The position numbers and the translations under genes were made by a program. Shown one piece after another: positions 4,818 through 52,890 of a DNA stretch of 64,000 bases (position 1 is its first letter; every line of letters begins with the position of its first letter). The stretch lies in sequence record NC_071039.1. One strand, given 5' to 3'. A model generated the notes under the pieces. The model searched no databases. It was given only the letters and a program-made list of their open reading frames with translations, and was not told the origin of the DNA.

Positions 4818-4830
4818 TATTATGTTAAGG

Positions 4831-4864
4831 AAATAAAAGGGTGTTATGCACCCTTTTATTTTTT
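4831..4864 (+). terminator. Intrinsic terminator just upstream of terL
   Basis: AAATAAAAGGGTG-ttatg-CACCCTTTTATTT plus T run. Confidence 0.75.
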
Positions 4865-4872
4865 ATTTAGAT

Positions 4873-6441
4873 ATGGCAGCAGAAGATTATTTAATTAAAA
4901 AGGCTTTTAAAAAGGTCTTATACACAGACAAACAGATAGAAGAATTAAAAAAATGCATGGATCCTATAAATGGTCCTATGTATTTTATGACAAATTTTGT
5001 CTACATTCAGCATCCTACAAAAGGTCGTCTGTTATTTAAACCGTTTCCATACCAAGTAGGTTTATTAGAAGCATTTCACAATTATAGATATTCTATAGCT
5101 ATGCTAGGAAGGCAGCTAGGTAAATCTACTGTAGCTGGATCTTATTTACTATGGTACGCAATGTTCGTACCTGATAGTTTTATTTTAGTTGCATCGAAAA
5201 CAGGCGGCGACGCCAAAGAGATTATGGGTCGAATTCGGTTTGCATATGAAAGTTTGCCAGATCATATTAGGGCAGGTGCAATTACTTATAATAAACATAG
5301 TATAGAATTTGATAACGGATCTAAGATTAAATCAACTACTACTACTGAAAATACAGGTAGGGGAATGTCCATTTCGTTGGTATATTTAGATGAAATGGCA
5401 TTCGTGCCGTACAATGTGGCTATAGAAATGTGGACTTCTCTATCACCTACATTATCCACTGGCGGTAAATGTATAATAACTTCTACGCCTAATACTGATG
5501 AGGATTTGTTTGCCGATATATGGCATAATGCAAACAAATTAACTGACGAATACGGAAATGAACGAAAAATAGGTGCTAATGGATTTAAGCCGTTTAAAGC
5601 TACTTGGAAAGATCATCCTGACAGAGATGAAAATTGGGCAACAATAGAGCGTGAAAAGATAGGGGAAGAAAGATTTCGTAGAGAACACGAAGTGGAGTTT
5701 ATTTCTTTTGAAGAAACTCTTATAAATTCTATAAAATTAAATCAATTAGAATCTAAAACTCCTATAAGAAAAACAGGCCAAGTCCGTTGGTATGAAGAAA
5801 TAAAGCCGACAAATACATATGTTGTTGGATTAGATCCATCTATGGGAGCTGGCGGCGACAATGCTGCAATACAAGTGTTAGAATTACCTACAATGAAACA
5901 AGTAGCTGAGTGGCAGCACAACAGAACACCAGTCGAGGGTCAAGTTAGGTTGTTAAATGAAATACTTACAGAAATACAAAACGCAGGTGTAGTAGAATTA
6001 TATTGGTCGTTGGAATCTAATAATTTAGGAGAAGCTGCATTAGTGGTAATACGTGATACAGGAGAAGAATATTTTCCTGGAACATTTTTGCATGATCCTG
6101 TAAAGCAAGCAGGGGCGAATAGTCGTAAAAGACAAGGTTTTCTTACTACTAATCGGACAAAAATAGAAGCATGTTCTAGATTGAAATCCTTAATAGAAAA
6201 TAATAAAATAAAAATATCATCTTCTGCATTGATTAGTGAATTAAAGAACTATGTACACAGAGGAGCCACGTTTGAAGCTCGACCAGGAACTACAGACGAT
6301 TTGGTGTCTGCACTTATATTAACACTAAGGATGACTCAGTTTATTGCATTATGGGATGATAATACAAATGGTGCAATCAGTGCAAGTATAGAAGTCGTCG
6401 ATGAGGATGACGATAGTATGCCCATGCCTTTCTTATTTTAA
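4873..6441 (+). CDS. terL: Terminase large subunit (T4 gp17-like)
   Basis: Walker A GRQLGKST, Walker B VYLDEMAF, TSTP, nuclease GLDPS..GGD and DDLV; the ORF-track ATG 4846 lies in the terminator loop, so 4873 is preferred. Confidence 0.95.
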   Translation: MAAEDYLIKKAFKKVLYTDKQIEELKKCMDPINGPMYFMTNFVYIQHPTKGRLLFKPFPYQVGLLEAFHNYRYSIAMLGRQLGKSTVAGSYLLWYAMFVPDSFILVASKTGGDAKEIMGRIRFAYESLPDHIRAGAITYNKHSIEFDNGSKIKSTTTTENTGRGMSISLVYLDEMAFVPYNVAIEMWTSLSPTLSTGGKCIITSTPNTDEDLFADIWHNANKLTDEYGNERKIGANGFKPFKATWKDHPDRDENWATIEREKIGEERFRREHEVEFISFEETLINSIKLNQLESKTPIRKTGQVRWYEEIKPTNTYVVGLDPSMGAGGDNAAIQVLELPTMKQVAEWQHNRTPVEGQVRLLNEILTEIQNAGVVELYWSLESNNLGEAALVVIRDTGEEYFPGTFLHDPVKQAGANSRKRQGFLTTNRTKIEACSRLKSLIENNKIKISSSALISELKNYVHRGATFEARPGTTDDLVSALILTLRMTQFIALWDDNTNGAISASIEVVDEDDDSMPMPFLF

Positions 6442-10967: not shown

Positions 10968-10976
10968 CTGTCCAGT

Positions 10977-11016
10977 GTCTCCGTCGAGGATAAATACTTT
11001 TATCTAAAACGGAGAC
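10977..11016 (+). promoter_or_regulatory. SD-sequestering hairpin with internal late promoter
   Basis: GTCTCCGT 10977-10984 / ACGGAGAC 11009-11016 covers GGAG; inner GATAAA/TTTATC stem; ATAAATA at 10990-10996. Confidence 0.8.
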
Positions 11017-11019
11017 TTT

Positions 11020-12453
11020 ATGGGAAATTACAATGTTCTTTCTACAAAAAACTTTAAGAAGCTATGTAATGAGTTAAACATAGTAACGATATCAGAAAAG
11101 TACATTTCTGATATACGTAAGATAGAAGATTCTGCTAAGAGCAAAGTGGATTCTGCATCTCAGCGTATGATATTAACTATGATAACTGTGAAAGTTCCCG
11201 ACTTATATGATGCATATAACAGATACTATCAGCTCAGAACAGATGGTATTAGTACAAAAACTCAAGACAGTATTTCTTATATTTTTGGAAAAGACTTCCT
11301 CGAATCTGTTAATTTACTAATCAGTAATAGATATAAAACTGCATTCCGTAAAGGAATGACAGTGGAAGAGGCATTTATAACACGTAATAAAGACTTTTCC
11401 AATAATGGTGTGTATTATAACCAGATGACTGATAAGCAAAAGAAACGTTTATCATTATTGCTTAGTGTGTATACACCAGAAAGGTTGGAGTTTTATAAAA
11501 AGACAATTTCGTTTTTTATTAAGTTAGATTTGACTAATTATGCAGGAAGAATGAAAAGACTGATGAAACTGGGATCTAGTACGTCTTTATATGCTAGCGT
11601 ATTACGGTATGGTAAATCTGTCGGAAAAAGCACACATTCATCTGTATCTGCGGTAAAGAGAAACTATTTGCCTACTTCGATACAATATTGGATGGCAAAG
11701 GGGTTTGATGAAGATACTGCATTAGTGAAGATAAACGAACATCAACAGAAAGCAAGTGCCATGTCTTCCAAAAAACTAAAAGGCACTAGCGAATACTCTG
11801 TTCGATCAGTTGCATATTGGATTAAAAACGGGTATAGCGAAGAAGAGGCAAAAGGGAAAGTATCTAATATACAGAATACTTGGAAAAATGTATCTCAAGA
11901 AGAGCGTGATCGAAGAATAGAATCGTGGATGACTACAATGAGTCTTAAAACAGACGAGGAGAAATCTTTGATAAACCTTAAAAAAACTCACAGCCCGGAA
12001 GGGATAATGGCAAGGACAAATTGCGATTATGATATTGCATTTAAGCAAAGCGTTGATTTTTTTAAGAAACGAAATAATTCTTCTAAAGTATCTCAAGAAC
12101 TATTTTGGGGAATTGCCGAGGATATCGATACCGATGGAGTTTACTTTTCTGAACTAAACTACGAATACCCTGTTATGGGGAAAATAGTAGATTTCTATGA
12201 TTCTAAAAGCAAAACAGTAATCGAATTTTATGGAAACTTTTGGCATGCAGATAGTACATATACTGATGACACACTGATATATGGAAAAACTGCTAAAGAA
12301 ATAAGAGAATCGGACATTTACAGAGAAACGTTAATTAGATCATCTGATTTGGTTAGTGATTTTATAGTAGTTTGGGAAAAGGACTTTAGGAAGAATCCGA
12401 AAGAAACAATTAAAAATTTAGTTAATATTTTAAATAATAAAAGGAAATTTTAA
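11020..12453 (+). mobile_element. Free-standing homing endonuclease (Vsr-like/EDxHD-type) between split-intein halves
   Basis: C-terminal VDFYD...VIEFYGNFWHAD...IVVWEKDF; repeated YW..KG..E..A modules; position inside recA. Confidence 0.8.
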
Positions 12454-45741: not shown

Positions 45742-46968
45742 ATGTCGAAAGAAACATGCTCTTATTGCAATAAAGGCAAAGATGATGTGTCTAAGTTGTT
45801 TCGTAGCCCTGCTAAATATGGATCAAATGTATATATATGTGACCAGTGTGTAACTCAGTGCAACAATTTTTTAGAAACTGCCGAAACAAATGATCAGGAA
45901 TCTAATAAATTAGAAATAAAATACACACCTGAAGAATTAAAGGAATTGCTAGATAAAGACATTGTAGGGCAAGATCACGCAAAAGAATTACTAAGTCTAG
46001 CGGTGTATAATCATTATAAACGGGTAAACTATAACACCACTGAACATGATGTAGAGTTATCTAAATCTAATATAATGCTATTGGGACCCTCAGGTAGCGG
46101 TAAGACATTTTTAATATCTAGTATATCTAAATTGTTAAACATACCTTTTGTTTCTGTAGATTCTACTTCGCTAACAGAGGCAGGATATGTCGGCGATCAT
46201 GTAGAGACTATATTTACTAGATTAATTGCAGAAGCAAATGGTGACATAGAACTAGCACAACGTGGAATCGTGTTTATAGATGAAATAGATAAGAAGCGTT
46301 CTAAAAAAGGAACAAATTCTGCAGGATCTGATGTTTCCGGCGAGGGCGTTCAACAGTCTTTACTTCGGGTGTTAGAAGGAACAACGATTAAATTAGAACT
46401 AAATTCTAACAGTATGTTTAGTCCTAGACAGGAAATTATGTTTGACACAACTAACGTTTTGTTTATAGTTGGCGGCGCATTTATAGGACTAGATGCAGTA
46501 ATAAATAAAAGACTTAGTTCTACTAAATCTCAAATGGGATTTGGTTCCGAAGCCGGTAAACCCATAGAAGGTAGTTTATTCTATGTAGAACCGGAAGATT
46601 TGTATACATACGGTTTTATAAGAGAATTTGTAGGAAGATTTCCTGTTCTTATCGCGTTTCATGATGTAACAGAGACTATGCTTCGTCGAATTCTAGTAGA
46701 GCCTAAAAGTTCTATACTTAAACAATATCAAACTATGTTTAAATTAGATAACATTGAATTAGAATTCGATGAAGATTTTATAAAATCTGTTGCTACTACA
46801 GCGTTTAATAGGAAAACAGGCGCTCGTGGTTTAAGAACTATTTTAGAAAAAGAACTATCTAGTATAGCATATAGATTGCCTTCTATAAGACGAGAAGGGT
46901 TTAGCAAGATTATTATACACGAACTAGGAAAACATAATTTCATAAAAGGGCAAAATGAAGACATTTAA
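45742..46968 (+). CDS. clpX: ClpX ATPase
   Basis: C4 Zn finger, GPSGSGKT, GYVG pore loop, DEIDK, DVSGEGVQQ, MGF loop, TGARGLR. Confidence 0.93.
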   Translation: MSKETCSYCNKGKDDVSKLFRSPAKYGSNVYICDQCVTQCNNFLETAETNDQESNKLEIKYTPEELKELLDKDIVGQDHAKELLSLAVYNHYKRVNYNTTEHDVELSKSNIMLLGPSGSGKTFLISSISKLLNIPFVSVDSTSLTEAGYVGDHVETIFTRLIAEANGDIELAQRGIVFIDEIDKKRSKKGTNSAGSDVSGEGVQQSLLRVLEGTTIKLELNSNSMFSPRQEIMFDTTNVLFIVGGAFIGLDAVINKRLSSTKSQMGFGSEAGKPIEGSLFYVEPEDLYTYGFIREFVGRFPVLIAFHDVTETMLRRILVEPKSSILKQYQTMFKLDNIELEFDEDFIKSVATTAFNRKTGARGLRTILEKELSSIAYRLPSIRREGFSKIIIHELGKHNFIKGQNEDI

Positions 46969-47161
46969 TATAATTAGTGGTCTTACTGTAGAAGTAAGAC
47001 ACGATAACTTTAACCAAGCACTTAGAACTTTTACTAAAAAGGTTCAAAATTCAGGAAAATTAAAAGAAGTTAGAGAACGCGAATTCTATGAAAAGCCTTC
47101 TGTAAAAAAGACAAAAGCTAAAAAAGCAGCAATTCAACGCCAGAAAAAGAAAAAAATATAA
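46955..47161 (+). CDS. rpsU: Ribosomal protein bS21 homologue
   Basis: ALR.F.KKV...G.L.E.R.REFYEKPS, basic tail. Confidence 0.88.
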   Translation: MKTFNIISGLTVEVRHDNFNQALRTFTKKVQNSGKLKEVREREFYEKPSVKKTKAKKAAIQRQKKKKI

Positions 47162-47163
47162 TA

Positions 47164-47499
47164 ATGGATCTTTGCAGGATTTTAAATAATGAACTTATGT
47201 TTTGCAGAAATCGTAGGAATAAACTCTATTATAGCCTACGGCAATTGGATAAAGTTGACATCCCTGTAGATCCTGCAGATTCTTTACTTATTTCCAGCAT
47301 AAAAATGGATATAGAACAGCTCCAATCGTATAAAGATGCTATATCCGAATGCAGTAGACTTGAACAACGTATAATCTGTATAGATAAAACTATGCAGTAT
47401 ATCCGTCGGTATTGCAATCATAAGTTTGTGTATCACAATACTAATTATCATACAAATACAGATGCAGAAAAATGCATTTATTGCGGATTAATAATTTAA
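47164..47499 (+). CDS. Hypothetical protein with C-terminal Zn-ribbon-like motif
   Basis: C.HK......C..CG. Confidence 0.5.
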   Translation: MDLCRILNNELMFCRNRRNKLYYSLRQLDKVDIPVDPADSLLISSIKMDIEQLQSYKDAISECSRLEQRIICIDKTMQYIRRYCNHKFVYHNTNYHTNTDAEKCIYCGLII

Positions 47500-47500
47500 T

Positions 47501-47971
47501 ATGGCATATTTTTCAACTAAGAGATTCGGACCTATTTCCACCGGCCATCGTCAATGGAAAGATACGGGTCATTGCAGCAGAATACACGGCTACGGAAGAA
47601 CAGTGAAGATTGTTTTTTCTGCTACTACATTAGATGATAAATTGTGGGTAGTAGATTTCGGCGGATTGAAAGATTTCAGGAAATGGCTGGAAGAACAATG
47701 GGATCATAATGTTTTAGTTGCATCTGACGATCCCAAGTTAAATATCCTTAAACAAATGGAACAAGAAGGTCTAGTTAAATTAAATATAATGGATGTTAAA
47801 AAAGGCCATGGTCCCGGAATAGAAGGTTCATGTAAGCATCTGTTTGACTATTTGAATCCCATTATAGAAAAACAATCTGGCGGAAGATGTTGGGTCCATA
47901 GTATAGAAATATGGGAACACGAAAACAATTCCGCTATATATGAAACATATAAGTCAACATTTAAAAGATAA
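47501..47971 (+). CDS. queD: QueD/PTPS family (copy 2)
   Basis: GHRQ, CSRIHGY, VVDFGGLK, DH, WEHENNSA. Confidence 0.8.
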   Translation: MAYFSTKRFGPISTGHRQWKDTGHCSRIHGYGRTVKIVFSATTLDDKLWVVDFGGLKDFRKWLEEQWDHNVLVASDDPKLNILKQMEQEGLVKLNIMDVKKGHGPGIEGSCKHLFDYLNPIIEKQSGGRCWVHSIEIWEHENNSAIYETYKSTFKR

Positions 47972-47978
47972 ATAACAT

Positions 47979-48057
47979 TAGTATTCCATGAGGAATACTA
48001 TACAATGAGTGCCTTATTGGGCTCACACTATATCTTGCGTAAAGGAGATTAAAAATG
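47979..48057 (+). promoter_or_regulatory. ROSE-like RNA thermometer candidate in hsp20 leader
   Basis: Three hairpins; the last pairs AUCUU(G)C with G-GAGAU across the SD, with a bulged G. Confidence 0.6.
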
Positions 48058-48486
48058 CAAAAACATGTTATAATGTCATCTAACCTAGCTAATTATAGAT
48101 ATGCACTAGGTGCAACTGATTTACTTAATACTATTACTAATGAACTTAGTAGCCAGAAGTTTCCTCCCCATAATTTGATAAAGAATGCAGACGGTAGCTA
48201 TTGTCTTGAATTAGCTCTTGCTGGATATGATAAATCTGAGCTAGACGTTTATGTAGATAGCAGAGAACGACTGTTAGTAATAGAAACAAAACCGGAACGA
48301 ATTTTTAAAACTGAAGTAGAATACGAACACAAAGGTATTTCTAGTAAAGATTTTTCTGTCAAATTCAGGCTTGTAGACGATCTTATAAATATATCTTCGT
48401 GCGGTATGAAAAATGGCATTCTAACAATAAAAATTCAACCGCCGAGTCCTGCAGAATCACAACGAAAAGTAATTGATATAGAATAA
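48055..48486 (+). CDS. Small heat shock protein (Hsp20/IbpA-like)
   Basis: FPPHNL, LELALAG, HKGIS...F, NGIL.I. Confidence 0.92.
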   Translation: MQKHVIMSSNLANYRYALGATDLLNTITNELSSQKFPPHNLIKNADGSYCLELALAGYDKSELDVYVDSRERLLVIETKPERIFKTEVEYEHKGISSKDFSVKFRLVDDLINISSCGMKNGILTIKIQPPSPAESQRKVIDIE

Positions 48487-48494
48487 TGTTTACA

Positions 48495-48527
48495 AATAAA
48501 AAGCTGGTATTCCAGCTTTTTATTTTT
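48495..48527 (+). terminator. Bidirectional terminator
   Basis: AATAAAAAGCTGG-tatt-CCAGCTTTTTATT. Confidence 0.8.
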
Positions 48528-48601
48528 GCTATATAACTTGACGACACTGTTTAAACATATATAATAATGTGTATCAATTACGATCAACTTGGGATTTAAA
48601 A

Positions 48602-48904
48602 ATGACTGTAAAGGTAGCTAATAAAGTTGAAACTTCGTCTACTGTATTTCAACCTAAGAAATATAATGTAGTTTTTCACAACGATAACAAAACCACTATG
48701 GAATTTGTTATGCAATTGTTAGTATATATATATGACTACGATGCATCTAGCGCATACAATACAATGATGGAAGTGCATGAACGCGGCGCAAAGATTGTAG
48801 GCAGCTATACAAAAGAAATTGCAGAATCGAAACAGTCTAAATCTGTTCAACTTGCTATTAACAACGGTTATCCTGATTTTAAAGTAACTGTAGAAGAATC
48901 GTAA
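48602..48904 (+). CDS. clpS: ClpS adaptor
   Basis: P..YNVVFHNDNKTTMEFV, MMEVHERG, EIAESK. Confidence 0.88.
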   Translation: MTVKVANKVETSSTVFQPKKYNVVFHNDNKTTMEFVMQLLVYIYDYDASSAYNTMMEVHERGAKIVGSYTKEIAESKQSKSVQLAINNGYPDFKVTVEES

Positions 48905-48978
48905 TACAGCAAAAACGGGGGTAGACACCTGCCCCCTTCCCTATTATAATAAATAAAGCATATAGGGATATAAGAATT

Positions 48979-49527
48979 ATGAATGATTCCATAAAGAAAT
49001 ACATATCTATTGCAGAAGCTGCATCGTCCGTAAAGAAAATTCCTATCCCGTATTCCGTAAGTAGTCTTAGTCCTACTTTCTCTAAAGATTTAGTAGAACT
49101 ACATTATGGAACATTATATTCTAATTACATATCTTCAGTAAACAAAGACCCCAGTAATAAATTTTCATTTGCAGGTGCATACTTGCATGGGATTTATTTT
49201 AGTCAATTTACTGATTCTCAAAAAAGATATTCTCCTTCCGGGATATTATTAAAAGATATAAAATCTAAATTTACTTCATTTTCTAAATTTAAAAATGAGG
49301 TTATATCTGCATGCATGGATGTTCATGGTTCTGGATGGATTTATGTTTCTAATACCCTTGTAATAAAGGAAATCCCAAATCATGAAGTAAGAGACGATAT
49401 ATTCTTACTTATTGATTGTTGGGAGCATGCATATATGCTCGATTATAAAGCAGACAAGAAGTCATACTACGAGAATATATGGAATATATTTAATTGGGAA
49501 TATCTGGAGGGTATGTATTCTCAATAA
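48979..49527 (+). CDS. sod: Fe/Mn superoxide dismutase-like protein
   Basis: ELHY, LH..YF, GSGW, DCWEHAY..DY; ATAAATA 48949-48955. Confidence 0.85.
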   Translation: MNDSIKKYISIAEAASSVKKIPIPYSVSSLSPTFSKDLVELHYGTLYSNYISSVNKDPSNKFSFAGAYLHGIYFSQFTDSQKRYSPSGILLKDIKSKFTSFSKFKNEVISACMDVHGSGWIYVSNTLVIKEIPNHEVRDDIFLLIDCWEHAYMLDYKADKKSYYENIWNIFNWEYLEGMYSQ

Positions 49528-49546
49528 ATAACTTCGGTGAATACTT

Positions 49547-49831
49547 ATGAGAACTAAAAAGCATTGGGATGAATGCCTCTTTTCTTTATCTTATGAAACT
49601 GCACAACACATGGCATTTGAATTAAAGGAATTTGCCAAGCAAGCAGGATTTAATCCAAACGGTATTAAAGTATTGTCGAAAAAACAAATTCATAAATATG
49701 TAAAAGCTGATGCAGCTATTATGTGGGGCGAAGGTCCAGAGTGTTGGGCTAATTCGTTATTGTTTAAAGATTTATTAGGAGTATACGTATCTACCTATAA
49801 GGGTAACACAATTCTATTTCATGACAGGTAA
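49547..49831 (+). CDS. Hypothetical protein
   Basis: 94 aa. Confidence 0.5.
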   Translation: MRTKKHWDECLFSLSYETAQHMAFELKEFAKQAGFNPNGIKVLSKKQIHKYVKADAAIMWGEGPECWANSLLFKDLLGVYVSTYKGNTILFHDR

Positions 49832-49840
49832 TGCAAATAA

Positions 49841-50134
49841 ATGATAGATATACACACTATTGGAAAAGATTACACAGTAATCAATAAAAGAAATGGTGTA
49901 TCTGTAACAGTTAGTGTGGTATTTTATAAAGATATTTTACGCAATATAAAACCATATTCTATAACTCAACCTATAGACCAATATGTAATTTATGTTTGTG
50001 AACAAATTAAACCAACTAAACCATATCACTGGCATACTAATTATTCGGAAACTATTAACTTAGAACATTTAATAAAAGAAACATTACAAAATAATAAACA
50101 ATTATTAATAATACAAGATTTATATACAGACTGA
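49841..50134 (+). CDS. Hypothetical protein
   Basis: 97 aa. Confidence 0.5.
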   Translation: MIDIHTIGKDYTVINKRNGVSVTVSVVFYKDILRNIKPYSITQPIDQYVIYVCEQIKPTKPYHWHTNYSETINLEHLIKETLQNNKQLLIIQDLYTD

Positions 50135-50201
50135 TATGGATAGCTTTTGCAACAAGAAGCTTGAAGATCGACACAAACGCATGACGTAATAAGGATTATA
50201 A

Positions 50202-50429
50202 ATGAAAACATTTGATTTTACTTTTGGAGTATATAGAGCTAAACAGTGTGAATGGAAAGGAAATTCTAAAACACAATGCGGAGCAAAACCTATAGAAGGA
50301 AAAGCATATTGTTTAGAACACTTTAAAAAGGCATATGTTAATATTTCTGAAGAAATGTTAGATAAACAAACAGAAGCACAGTTAAAGAAATTAGAAAAAG
50401 AAATGCCTGTGGTAATCGAAGAAGAGTAA
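50202..50429 (+). CDS. GcrA C-terminal-domain-like protein
   Basis: CEW......CGA......YCLEH...AY. Confidence 0.55.
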   Translation: MKTFDFTFGVYRAKQCEWKGNSKTQCGAKPIEGKAYCLEHFKKAYVNISEEMLDKQTEAQLKKLEKEMPVVIEEE

Positions 50430-50460
50430 AAACAATCCCCGCAATTGCGGGGATTGTTTT
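50429..50460. terminator. 32-bp perfect palindrome / bidirectional terminator
   Basis: AAAACAATCCCCGCAA|TTGCGGGGATTGTTTT. Confidence 0.8.
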
Positions 50461-50474
50461 ATAAGGAGATAAAA

Positions 50475-51119
50475 TTGGAACTTAAAACAGATGAACAGAA
50501 ATCTATAATAGGAACATTTGCAACTTTAATGTTAACTAGAATATTTGCAGCCGCCGGTGCATATTTAGCATTAACTATGCCAATTCTTAATATGAATTTA
50601 CTTGTGTGTATATTTTCATATTTTGCTATAATGTTTATTATAGATTGTATTAGAACAAATGTGTATGTGTCTATCGTAGGGAGTGTATTTTTATTATTTT
50701 GGCAAGGAATAACATTAGGGAATGGATTAACTGCGTTACTGGGTGAAGTAGCGCCATTATTAGTTTTAGTTATGTTTACTATAAGTTCGTTTTTATATAT
50801 GTTTCTTTGTGCAAACGCAATTATGTCAAAAAACATTTTTAGTTTCGCGTCGTCATTTAATGTTTCTATAGCAATGACTTTGCTTGTGACCATAGTAATG
50901 TCTATACTATTAGATCTATCAGTCAGTTATTGTATAGGCAGTATGATAATAAACGTGATTAATTGCGTGGTAATACTCAAAACATTAGAAGATTGTATAA
51001 ACGAAAAATGTGAAAATATATCTATGCAAAAACTATCTACAACTGTAGTATTATTTTGGTACGATACAATAATGGAGTCTATAGAGAAACTTTTAAAACT
51101 ATTTACATATAAGCGGTAA
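50475..51119 (+). CDS. Multi-pass membrane protein, Bax-inhibitor-1/YccA-like
   Basis: TTG after AAGGAG; ~7 hydrophobic segments; GITLG and LFWYDTI...LL.LF patterns. Confidence 0.55.
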   Translation: MELKTDEQKSIIGTFATLMLTRIFAAAGAYLALTMPILNMNLLVCIFSYFAIMFIIDCIRTNVYVSIVGSVFLLFWQGITLGNGLTALLGEVAPLLVLVMFTISSFLYMFLCANAIMSKNIFSFASSFNVSIAMTLLVTIVMSILLDLSVSYCIGSMIINVINCVVILKTLEDCINEKCENISMQKLSTTVVLFWYDTIMESIEKLLKLFTYKR

Positions 51120-51159
51120 ACAGTTATATTACACACATAACCCCTTATAGGATCAAATA

Positions 51160-52890
51160 ATGCAACATATTGTTAAGTTCATAAAAAATAACAGATTTAT
51201 TATTTTATTTCTTGTAATATGCATAACTGGATTTGCGTTAACGATTAATTACAAGCCGACTAGTGTGTCTATAAACACCTTTTTATCAGACGCATCGAGC
51301 GGTAAAATAATTAGTGTTAAATTAAAAGAAGATGGACAAACACTACAGTATGTTACTAACACATCAGACAGAAGAAAAGTAACATTCCCCGGAGATACTA
51401 GTAAATTAATAGAATCATTTCTTAAAGCAGGTGTTCCTGTAGTAACTGAAGAACCTTCTACCCCTAGTCCATTCCTTACTAGTTTGGTGTCTGGACTTAT
51501 AGTAATGTTAGTATTTTTAATTTTAATGGTATTCGTTTTGAAGCGAATGGGTCCTGGCTCTTCATTAGATGCAAAAAGTAAATCTAAACTTCGCAAGATA
51601 GAACCAAAAGACATTGAAGTAACGTTTAACGATGTAGCTGGTCATACTCACGAAATAAATGAAGTAAAAGAGTTAGTTGATTTTATTGCTCATCGATCTA
51701 AGTATTCTAGCATGGGAATAGATGTGCCTCGTGGAATTCTAATGCACGGCAGCCCTGGCGTCGGGAAAACACTCTTAGCAAAGGCAATGGCAAAAGAGGC
51801 AAATGTTAATTTTTTCTATGTTGCTGGATCTGAGTTTAATGATACATTTGTCGGTGTAGGTGCAAACCGTGTAACAGATATGTTTAAAAAAGCAAAGGAA
51901 GCTGCGCCGTGCATTATTTTCATAGACGAAATTGATGCACTTGCACAACAACGTTCTACTAAAATATCTAATGGGTCAGACCAAACACTCAATCAGTTAT
52001 TAGTAGAAATGGATGGAATGCAAGATAACGATGGTATTACAATTCTTGCAGCTACTAATAGACTAGATATATTAGACCCGGCTGTTATTCGTCCTAAACG
52101 ATTTGACAGAATTGTTCAACTAAGCTTACCTGATGTGGGGATTAGGCAGAAGATTTTAGAAATAAATGCAAATGGAAAAACATTTGAAGACAATGTAGAT
52201 TTTTCAGTAATAGCAAAAGGAACTCCTGGATTCTCTGGTGCTGAGTTAGCTAAACTAGTCAATGAGGCTGCAATCTATGCAGTAAGGTCTGGACAAACTG
52301 TAATTACCCAGGAGCATGTAGAACGAGCAAAAGATAAGGTGTTAATGGGTGAAAATTCGACAAAGAAATATACCCAAGAAGAATTGCTTCGTACTGCATA
52401 CCATGAAGCTGGTCATGCAATATCGGGTGTAATTTACAAATCCAATGATAACTTGCATAAAGTATCTATCATTCCTCGAGGTCTAGCACTAGGTGTAACT
52501 GTATTTCTTCCTAACGAAGAGCCTTCTGTTAGCAAAGAGCAACTCATGAATAAATTAGTTACTTTAATGGCAGGCCGTGCAGCAGAAGAACTCATATACG
52601 GTGAGTCTGCAATATCCACCGGCGCGAGTTCAGATATAAAGAGAGCAACCGAACTTGCAGTATACATGACTACATCGTGTGGTTTCGGTAGTATAGGTCC
52701 GGTTGCGACATCAACCCTGTCTAGTTTGCAATCTAGTGCAGAACAAGACGCAGCAATTCTAGTAAAAGATGCGTACAATAAGGCCATAACATTACTTTCG
52801 GATAAAAAGGCTGAATTAAAACTTGTAGCAGACTTGTTAATGGAAAAAGAAACAATAGATTGTGCAGAAGTAGAACAAGTTCTTGCATAA
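51160..52890 (+). CDS. ftsH: FtsH AAA+ Zn metalloprotease
   Basis: Two TMs, GSPGVGKT, FVGVGA, DEID, SRH ATNR...RPKRFDR, HEAGH. Confidence 0.93.
   Translation: MQHIVKFIKNNRFIILFLVICITGFALTINYKPTSVSINTFLSDASSGKIISVKLKEDGQTLQYVTNTSDRRKVTFPGDTSKLIESFLKAGVPVVTEEPSTPSPFLTSLVSGLIVMLVFLILMVFVLKRMGPGSSLDAKSKSKLRKIEPKDIEVTFNDVAGHTHEINEVKELVDFIAHRSKYSSMGIDVPRGILMHGSPGVGKTLLAKAMAKEANVNFFYVAGSEFNDTFVGVGANRVTDMFKKAKEAAPCIIFIDEIDALAQQRSTKISNGSDQTLNQLLVEMDGMQDNDGITILAATNRLDILDPAVIRPKRFDRIVQLSLPDVGIRQKILEINANGKTFEDNVDFSVIAKGTPGFSGAELAKLVNEAAIYAVRSGQTVITQEHVERAKDKVLMGENSTKKYTQEELLRTAYHEAGHAISGVIYKSNDNLHKVSIIPRGLALGVTVFLPNEEPSVSKEQLMNKLVTLMAGRAAEELIYGESAISTGASSDIKRATELAVYMTTSCGFGSIGPVATSTLSSLQSSAEQDAAILVKDAYNKAITLLSDKKAELKLVADLLMEKETIDCAEVEQVLA

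Follow-up and report, generated by a model that had tools for sequence, protein, structure and literature searches.

The hsp20 leader of Pseudomonas phage PA5oct and its resemblance to ROSE-type RNA thermometers

The hsp20 locus and its transcript

We analysed the leader of a small heat-shock gene, hsp20, in a stretch of 64,000 nucleotides (nt) from sequence record NC_071039.1 (the window; record coordinate = window coordinate + 124000). Window positions 47000-49600 were 100% identical to Pseudomonas phage vB_PaeM_PA5oct, a jumbo phage, and nine further Wroclawvirus genomes showed 97.6-99.2% identity to PA5oct over the same interval. A preliminary description of the locus had placed a late promoter before hsp20 and had proposed that the leader folds into three hairpins, the last of which buries the Shine-Dalgarno sequence (SD) in the manner of a ROSE element, an RNA thermometer known from bacterial small heat-shock protein (sHsp) genes. 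The gene and the signals that surround it are listed here.

48055-48486, plus strand: coding sequence of hsp20, a small heat-shock protein of 143 amino acids (Pfam HSP20, E 2.9e-10; PHROG 432, E 2.7e-25)
47967-47974, plus strand: late promoter motif GATAAATA of the T4 late-promoter type (7/8 matches to TATAAATA; contains ATAAATA at 47968-47974)
47980, plus strand: putative transcription start at the sixth nt after the motif, placed by the T4 spacing rule and not by mapping
48494-48525, no strand assigned: bidirectional terminator-like hairpin (A-run, GCUGG stem, U-run; a 14-nt perfect inverted repeat) that ends the hsp20 transcript, depth falling after 48450
48538-48565, plus strand: sigma-70-type promoter of clpS (TTGACG-16-TATAAT, 11/12 consensus matches), which opens the next, earlier-expressed unit

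The promoter motif overlaps the stop codon of the upstream PTPS/QueD-like gene. In 24 of its 32 copies across 250.8 kb, GATAAATA ended 10-95 nt before a start codon on the same strand, against an expectation of 5.7% (p 9e-24). Over positions 36001-286783 of the PA5oct record it was the top 8-mer for location upstream of start codons and by far the most position-specific one, and an unbiased k-mer test returned ATAAATA and GATAAATA as the words most concentrated 10-95 nt before starts, both in the window and in the genome. Gene starts outside the window came from an open reading frame (ORF) heuristic, which within the window recovered 85 of the 86 annotated ends and 71 identical starts. The genes behind GATAAATA were mostly virion structural genes, including those for tail sheath, tail tube, baseplate, tail fibre and for many proteins that mass spectrometry had detected. 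The T4 consensus TATAAATA itself was not enriched in the window (12 copies vs 20.9 expected). PA5oct gp346 proved to be a late sigma factor of the gp55 family (PHROG 12791, E 8e-82; phrog_234, E 1e-17; BLASTP to T4 gp55, E 5e-6), and its gene adjoins gp46/47-like genes. Because of the positional enrichment, the virion genes and the gp55-family sigma factor, GATAAATA at 47967-47974 is best read as a T4-type late promoter, and this evidence supports the promoter as real. The published study of PA5oct describes only sigma-70-like promoters (TTGAC/TATAATA) and dependence on the host RNA polymerase (PMC7318152); our literature search for the motif GATAAATA returned primers only.

RNA evidence was taken from summed assembler contig (word) depth in four public RNA-seq runs (X1-X4). 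In X3, depth was 14.6k at 47900-47949, rose to 266k and reached 470k by 48100, stayed at 200-470k along hsp20, and dropped after 48450, in a crude measure that has neither direction nor 5' ends and gives no placement to the nucleotide. The rise between 47950 and 48050 was 10-30 fold in X3 and X4, and X2 showed the same step. From this step and the fall after 48450, it follows that hsp20 has its own 5' end within the spacer and its own terminator. The ratio of hsp20 to clpS depth shifted more than 100-fold, from ~0.01-0.03 in X1 and X2, in which clpS depth was ~30-100 fold above that of hsp20, to ~2.5-3 in X3 and X4, in which the order was reversed. With the time points of the runs as we infer them, the hsp20 transcript appears later than that of clpS. 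The late promoter of the preliminary description (ATAAATA at 47968-47974) is thus borne out by motif enrichment, by a gp55-like sigma factor and by a depth step with later appearance.

On the same strand as hsp20 lie, upstream, the proteostasis neighbours ClpX, ribosomal protein S21 and the PTPS/QueD-like gene and, downstream, ClpS, superoxide dismutase, a YccA-like protein and FtsH. The phage proteostasis set at window positions 45742-52890 is unusually complete (ClpX, ClpS, Hsp20, a YccA-like FtsH modulator and FtsH); S21 and superoxide dismutase adjoin this cluster, and a GroES-like chaperonin, DnaJ and ClpA are found ~15-25 kb beyond it. The Hsp20 protein was 100% identical across the 10 Wroclawvirus genomes. 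Closer relatives of it, sought for covariation, were absent from IMG/VR, and 5.8 billion proteins yielded a single one with 36% identity, whose contig has a different gene context but carries a ROSE-type hairpin as well.

The motif GATAAATA precedes virion genes on both strands, with one divergent pair at record positions 78730 and 78757. At window positions 10968-11019, an 8-nt inverted repeat (GTCTCCGT ... ACGGAGAC) flanks another GATAAATA late promoter. In a read-through transcript of the gene at 11020, the SD would be locked (predicted opening energy 18.6 kcal/mol, the window maximum); in a transcript from the late promoter, which would be without the 5' arm, the SD would be open (predicted 74% unpaired). 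The T4 lysozyme and soc genes have the same arrangement of inverted repeat and late promoter.

Hairpins of the leader

From the putative start, the hsp20 leader (47980-48054) would span 75 nt, the longest of 24 PA5oct late leaders, the others having 14-53 nt. Three hairpins can be drawn in it.

47979-48000, plus strand: hairpin 1, a stem of 9 bp without mismatch, closed by loop AUGA and lying at the 5' end of the putative mRNA (-10.0 kcal/mol, z -4.7)
48006-48025, plus strand: hairpin 2, a stem of 7 pairs from which G48011 bulges, closed by loop UUAUU (-6.0 kcal/mol, z -1.7)
48032-48049, plus strand: hairpin 3, anti-SD AUCUU[G]C (48032-48038) against SD GGAGAU (48044-48049), with G48037 bulged and one U-G pair (-2.5 kcal/mol at 37 C, -4.6 at 20 C)

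The first two are present as the preliminary description had drawn them. None of 200 shuffles gave a hairpin as good as the 9-bp stem, which is also the strongest 5' hairpin among the 24 late leaders. Under the T4 spacing rule, A47980 would be its first paired base; folded from that +1, which falls on the first paired nt, the hairpin had an energy of -9.4 kcal/mol. The stem with a bulged G at 48006-48025 keeps its 7 pairs and is statistically marginal (13/200 shuffles as good); its outer U-A pair is specific to PA5oct, the nine relatives reading C48006. For the whole 96-nt leader z was -2.1. By single-sequence statistics, hairpin 1 exceeds chance and hairpin 3 does not, with hairpin 2 at the margin.

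In the 83-nt spacer upstream of hsp20, 4 sites varied among the 10 Wroclawvirus genomes. Hairpin loops hold three of them (two in hairpin 1, one in hairpin 2), and the fourth belongs to the outer pair of hairpin 2. The C-to-T change at 48006 gives PA5oct alone this outer U-A pair together with a 15-codon upstream ORF (48005-48052). Two candidate leader peptides, from ATG 47988 (6 codons) and ATG 48005 (15 codons, ending 2 nt before hsp20), were rejected because the first ATG reads ACG in 6 of the 10 relatives and the second in 9 of 10. The ten phages did not differ at any site from 48015 to 48203, an interval that takes in the final third of the leader and codons 1-50 of hsp20; the next 94 hsp20 codons held 10 synonymous differences, and in the upstream gene 19% of third positions were variable. 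Either constraint on the initiation region or a block of recombination could account for this invariance.

The palindromic form of hairpin 1 admits another use. Hairpin 1 (and hairpin 2) might serve at the DNA level as an operator, bound by a dimeric regulator at +1 to +22; alternatives would be a site of RNase processing or a partial terminator that insulates hsp20 from the early operon upstream of it. Operators, too, can take the form of a perfect 9-bp inverted repeat whose centre varies, and the depth step is equally compatible with a processed end just past hairpin 1. Against such roles, no U-tract follows the stem, the early run X1 has read-through at about half the upstream depth, and the palindrome is unique in the genome; moreover, other phages have unrelated sequences with a hairpin at the same +1 position, which argues for a role at the RNA level. 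We regard this group of explanations as very improbable. As the main role of hairpin 1, intrinsic termination of the upstream operon was rejected, the plus strand being without a U-tract and X1 reading through. A repeated element was likewise rejected, with no second copy of hairpin 1 or 2 at <=4 mismatches in 250 kb of PA5oct. Heat-shock operators of the CIRCE/HAIR type did not fit in half-sites and spacing, as judged by eye.

The SD hairpin and its counterparts in other phages

Taken as a single sequence, hairpin 3 does not stand out, and its support comes solely from comparison with other phages. We searched IMG/VR with single Hsp20 proteins, because an alignment of eight phage Hsp20 proteins was too divergent; four such queries gave 119 loci and 50 distinct leaders, and a Vibrio phage Hsp20 query returned no loci. 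The motif U(U/C)GCU stood next to the SD in 46 of the 50 distinct phage hsp20 leaders vs 7 of 75 SD-bearing neighbour genes from the same loci, in counts that overstate independence, the leaders being phylogenetically related. It lies directly before the SD in Atu_ph07 (a 490-kb Agrobacterium phage), HTVC008M, P-SSM4, S-SSM5 and an unrelated metagenomic contig. The family core is CUC[G]CUU, a loop of 3-6 nt and AAGGAG, forming six pairs with a bulged G, around which flanks, loop and spacer vary freely; it matches the ROSE_2 core of E. coli ibpA, CUC[G]CUG/CAGGAG. Its bearers include T4-like cyanophages, pelagiphages, relatives of Atu_ph07 and other phages, in at least seven protein-level lineages (<70% mutual identity).

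A covariance model of the phage SD hairpin (R1), built without PA5oct, found the hsp20 leader as the sole match at E<0.05 in 44 of 45 loci (111 kb, both strands). Cells of R1 were in standard pairs in 94% of cases vs 55-69% when the partners were slid, and two of its pairs were changed on both sides; covariation is limited because one arm must remain the SD. A CUC[G]CUU/AAGGAG hairpin is thereby conserved before hsp20 in many distant phages. The energies of family hairpins ranged from -2.2 to -3.4 kcal/mol (37 C) and from -4.4 to -6.3 kcal/mol (20 C), and individually these hairpins fail the shuffle test. A promoter motif, nnTAAATA, was present in 40 of 52 phage hsp20 leaders, and in 36 of 52 the +1 given by the T4 spacing rule coincided exactly with the opening nt of a stable hairpin, often one with a UUCG loop. 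This comparison therefore defines a module of late promoter, 5'-terminal hairpin, A/C-rich linker and ROSE-type SD hairpin. One cyanophage leader carries two 5' hairpins, like PA5oct.

PA5oct shares the promoter-and-5'-hairpin part of this architecture, with its promoter of the nnTAAATA type and a putative +1 on a stable hairpin. R1 aligns to PA5oct at 48023-48054 with 13.3 bits, with the bulged G in register and 4 of the 6 model pairs formed. G48037 bulges between U48036-G48045 and C48038-G48044, in the same register as in the phage family and in E. coli ibpA. Relative to the model, hairpin 3 is missing two upper U-A pairs and has two extra lower pairs, exactly the arrangement of Atu_ph07, and its energies (-2.5 and -4.6 kcal/mol at 37 and 20 C) fall inside the family range. 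The motif UUGCG lies at 48035-48039, its last position in the loop, as in Atu_ph07, which has UUGCU. The lower C48034-G48047 pair is present, and above C48038-G48044 there are only a G-A mismatch and the loop. The SD hairpin of Atu_ph07 is the same as that of PA5oct apart from the loop.

Hairpin 3 might instead be a chance complement of a strong SD in an AT-rich leader, unrelated to the hairpins of other phages, with the promoter and hairpins 1 and 2 real. Three results favour this account, of which the R1 score also weighs against a thermometer. Hairpin 3 was equalled by 27 of 200 shuffles, and by 84 of 200 in a 35-nt context, and T[TC]GC occurs at the same position before 28 of 332 PA5oct genes. 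The R1 score of 13.3 bits is below that of the trained members (17-39 bits) and has a window-wide E of 0.66, with seven better matches in coding sequence. However, among ~330 genes in 250 kb, the hsp20 leader gave the only R1 match of >=11.8 bits that abuts a start codon (the next positioned match had 10.0 bits), and the chance of a match before hsp20 specifically is ~4e-4 by an estimate from ~26 matches of >=12 bits in 500 kb. In addition, both the register of the bulged G and the promoter-hairpin architecture are shared with the family, whose own members individually fail the shuffle test too. In E. coli K-12, R1 gave the ibpB leader 13.7 bits and did not match the ROSE element of ibpA at E<=1 (weakest listed match 11.4 bits), so a low R1 score leaves a working thermometer possible. 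We consider a chance complement improbable, if less so than an operator or processing role for hairpin 1.

Further results weigh against the view that hairpin 3 closes the ribosome-binding site (RBS) in the cold and opens it in the heat. The preliminary description had the SD buried in a hairpin with a bulged G and a U-G pair; such a hairpin can be drawn, but RNAfold keeps only its five lower pairs (-2.5 kcal/mol), the exact fold with C48038-G48044 has -1.2 kcal/mol at 37 C, and its stability is like that of shuffles. The bulged G does lie opposite the SD, as described, whereas the motif UUGCG agrees with the exact U(U/C)GCU motif at 4 of 5 positions; a single pair stands above the bulge, and the upper G-C clamp, which is required in P. 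putida (PMC3669281), is absent. The minimum free energy fold of the whole leader is a competing helix, UUGCGU (48035-48040) with AUGCAA (48055-48060), that masks the AUG instead of the SD. The SD was predicted to be 63-67% unpaired at 37 C; from the putative start the predicted values were 34/63/68% at 15/37/42 C. Predicted opening energy over -15 to +5 was 5.3/4.1/3.7 kcal/mol at 25/37/42 C, rank 47 of 86 among window genes; for the decrease between 25 and 42 C the rank was 71 of 86, so that the predicted change is small and unremarkable; E. coli ibpA had 8.8/6.6/5.6 kcal/mol. These values come from nearest-neighbour models, which do not include the non-canonical pairs of ROSE. Considered alone, these accessibility results, the frequency of T[TC]GC before PA5oct genes and the lack of an Rfam ROSE match would argue for an ordinary open RBS. 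The crudeness of the contig depth and the deduced time points of the runs also count on this side, and Wroclawvirus covariation is lacking because the hairpin 3 region is invariant.

Rfam scans point the same way. Scans of 1301 nt and of 121 nt gave no match to ROSE, ROSE_2 or ROSE_3 at E<=10, and the same tool gave the E. coli ibpA leader, our positive control, 100.4 bits with ROSE_2. The other Rfam matches were noise (freshwater-2, 16.3 bits, E 1.3). Among the phage leaders scanned, the only Rfam ROSE match was Atu_ph07 with ROSE_3 (28 bits, E 0.016, below the gathering score). PA5oct is accordingly filed as a variant of the ROSE-like phage module that stands outside the curated ROSE families, because the ROSE features of Krajewski et al. 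are partly present: the motif at 4/5, the bulged G and the lower G-C pair, with the upper clamp absent (PMC3669281).

The main rival to a thermometer is constitutive high late expression, in which the 5' hairpins are stabilisers or insulators, the SD is mostly open, and hairpin 3 is a decayed ROSE remnant that no longer regulates. An hsp20 RNA depth 10-30 times that of the upstream gene, the rank of hairpin 1 as the strongest 5' hairpin of 24, an RBS accessibility that is average to high for PA5oct and the loss of the two upper U-A pairs all agree with it. A decayed remnant sits less well with the fact that hairpin 3 is as stable as intact family hairpins, because the two lower pairs compensate, or with the occurrence of the same variant in Atu_ph07. 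The bulged G, the feature that makes ROSE heat-labile, has also been kept. We judge constitutive expression to be unlikely, although clearly more probable than either of the other two explanations.

Two side observations concern initiation regions. Leader positions 47982-48057 weakly and non-significantly resemble freshwater-2, with hairpins followed by an AAAGGAG SD and AUG. At window positions 4826-4870, a terminator-like hairpin (ATAAAAGGGTG ... CACCCTTTTAT, then a T-run) holds the annotated ATG of the large terminase (4846) in its loop; the predicted opening energy at this ATG is 18.3 kcal/mol, and a further ATG in the same frame follows at 4873. The large terminase may have been annotated with a wrong start, or its RBS may be strongly masked.

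Proposed mechanism and comparison with known systems

In the mechanism that we propose, host RNA polymerase with the gp55-like late sigma factor would start at GATAAATA, near 47980. The mRNA would open with a very stable hairpin and then a second one, whose role is most likely protection of the 5' end and shaping of the leader fold, and this monocistronic hsp20 mRNA would end at the terminator at 48494-48525. Close before the start codon, the AUCUU[G]C/GGAGAU hairpin, read here as a divergent copy of the conserved ROSE-type phage hairpin CUC[G]CUU/AAGGAG, would partly mask a strong SD. By analogy with ROSE, this hairpin should open on warming, so that synthesis of the chaperone would be late in timing and scaled by temperature. 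The promoter motif, the sigma factor, the RNA step with its timing, hairpin 1 and the family resemblance come directly from computation.

We tentatively prefer, at a little under even confidence, the reading in which a late monocistronic hsp20 mRNA has protective first hairpins and a divergent ROSE-type last hairpin that opens with heat; what we infer here is where exactly transcription starts, that the 5' end is stabilised, and that the SD hairpin melts with a dynamic range large enough to be useful. Of the ROSE-like element claimed in the preliminary description, the anatomy stood, with the bulged G in the register of the phage family, but PA5oct gave no Rfam ROSE match, and thermodynamic models showed no unusual masking or temperature sensitivity of its RBS. 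Our analysis supports a ROSE-like anatomy, and a thermometer function seems plausible. The wider proposal, that a conserved phage module of T4-type late promoter, 5' hairpin, A/C-rich linker and minimal bulged-G ROSE SD hairpin makes sHsp translation temperature-dependent in T4-like cyanophages, pelagiphages, Atu_ph07-like phages and PA5oct-like jumbo phages, is possible, and we hold it with more reserve than the proposal for PA5oct.

If the proposal is true, no ROSE-class RNA thermometer would have been described in a virus before these leaders, of which PA5oct would carry a shifted variant. ROSE, so far found only before bacterial sHsp genes, would extend to viruses and would there be fused to a phage late promoter and not to that of sigma-32. 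Phages would sense temperature directly and dose a chaperone during virion assembly. The device would also exist in abundant marine cyanophages and pelagiphages, in which temperature shapes the outcome of infection, and in therapeutic Pseudomonas jumbo phages, which move between environments at ~20 C and hosts at 37-40 C. For the annotation of Wroclawvirus genomes, the pairing of the late-promoter motif GATAAATA with a gp55-like sigma factor is useful independently of temperature, as is the rule that late hsp20 mRNAs begin with a hairpin. The preliminary description knew of no characterised phage ROSE, and our literature search, whose coverage was incomplete and which amounts to absence of evidence only, likewise found no published work in which RNA thermometers or ROSE are connected with the hsp20 genes of phages or cyanophages.

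Each part of the proposed leader has a counterpart in a known system. T4 late promoters share with PA5oct an 8-mer at about -10, the absence of a -35 element, a place before virion genes and a gp55-like sigma factor; they use TATAAATA together with gp55, gp33 and the sliding clamp, whereas the PA5oct motif GATAAATA has G as its first base. The E. coli ompA leader is a 5'-terminal stem-loop that stabilises its mRNA. Like such stabilisers, PA5oct hsp20 has a stable hairpin at the first nt, given its putative start, and a very abundant mRNA. The thermosensor in lambda cIII mRNA (Altuvia 1989) has two exclusive folds and favours translation at low temperature (PMC4166951). As in our proposal, temperature restructures the start region of a phage mRNA, but lambda cIII is neither a ROSE element nor a heat-shock gene. 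Short, weak SD hairpins are also known from the lineage of cyanophage hosts, in the single-hairpin thermometer of Synechocystis hsp17 and the ROSE-like leaders of cyanobacterial sHsp genes (PMC4166951).

The closest comparison is with ROSE itself (RF00435; RF01832, ROSE_2; RF02523, ROSE_3) and with the two-hairpin ibpA leader of Pseudomonas (PMC3669281). A ROSE element comprises two to four hairpins, of which the one nearest the 3' end contains the SD, and in PA5oct three are predicted, the third of them weak and in competition with a helix that masks the AUG. PA5oct differs from ROSE in that it matches no Rfam ROSE covariance model, reads UUGCG, has one pair above the bulge in place of three and two extra pairs below it, and has no upper G-C clamp. 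For its transcription a phage late promoter takes the place of sigma-32, and its thermometer function is a prediction. Like ROSE, the PA5oct element lies in the 5' untranslated region of an sHsp gene, and the two share one or more stable 5' hairpins, a labile 3' hairpin, an imperfectly paired anti-SD with a bulged G, and a start codon that stands outside the hairpin.

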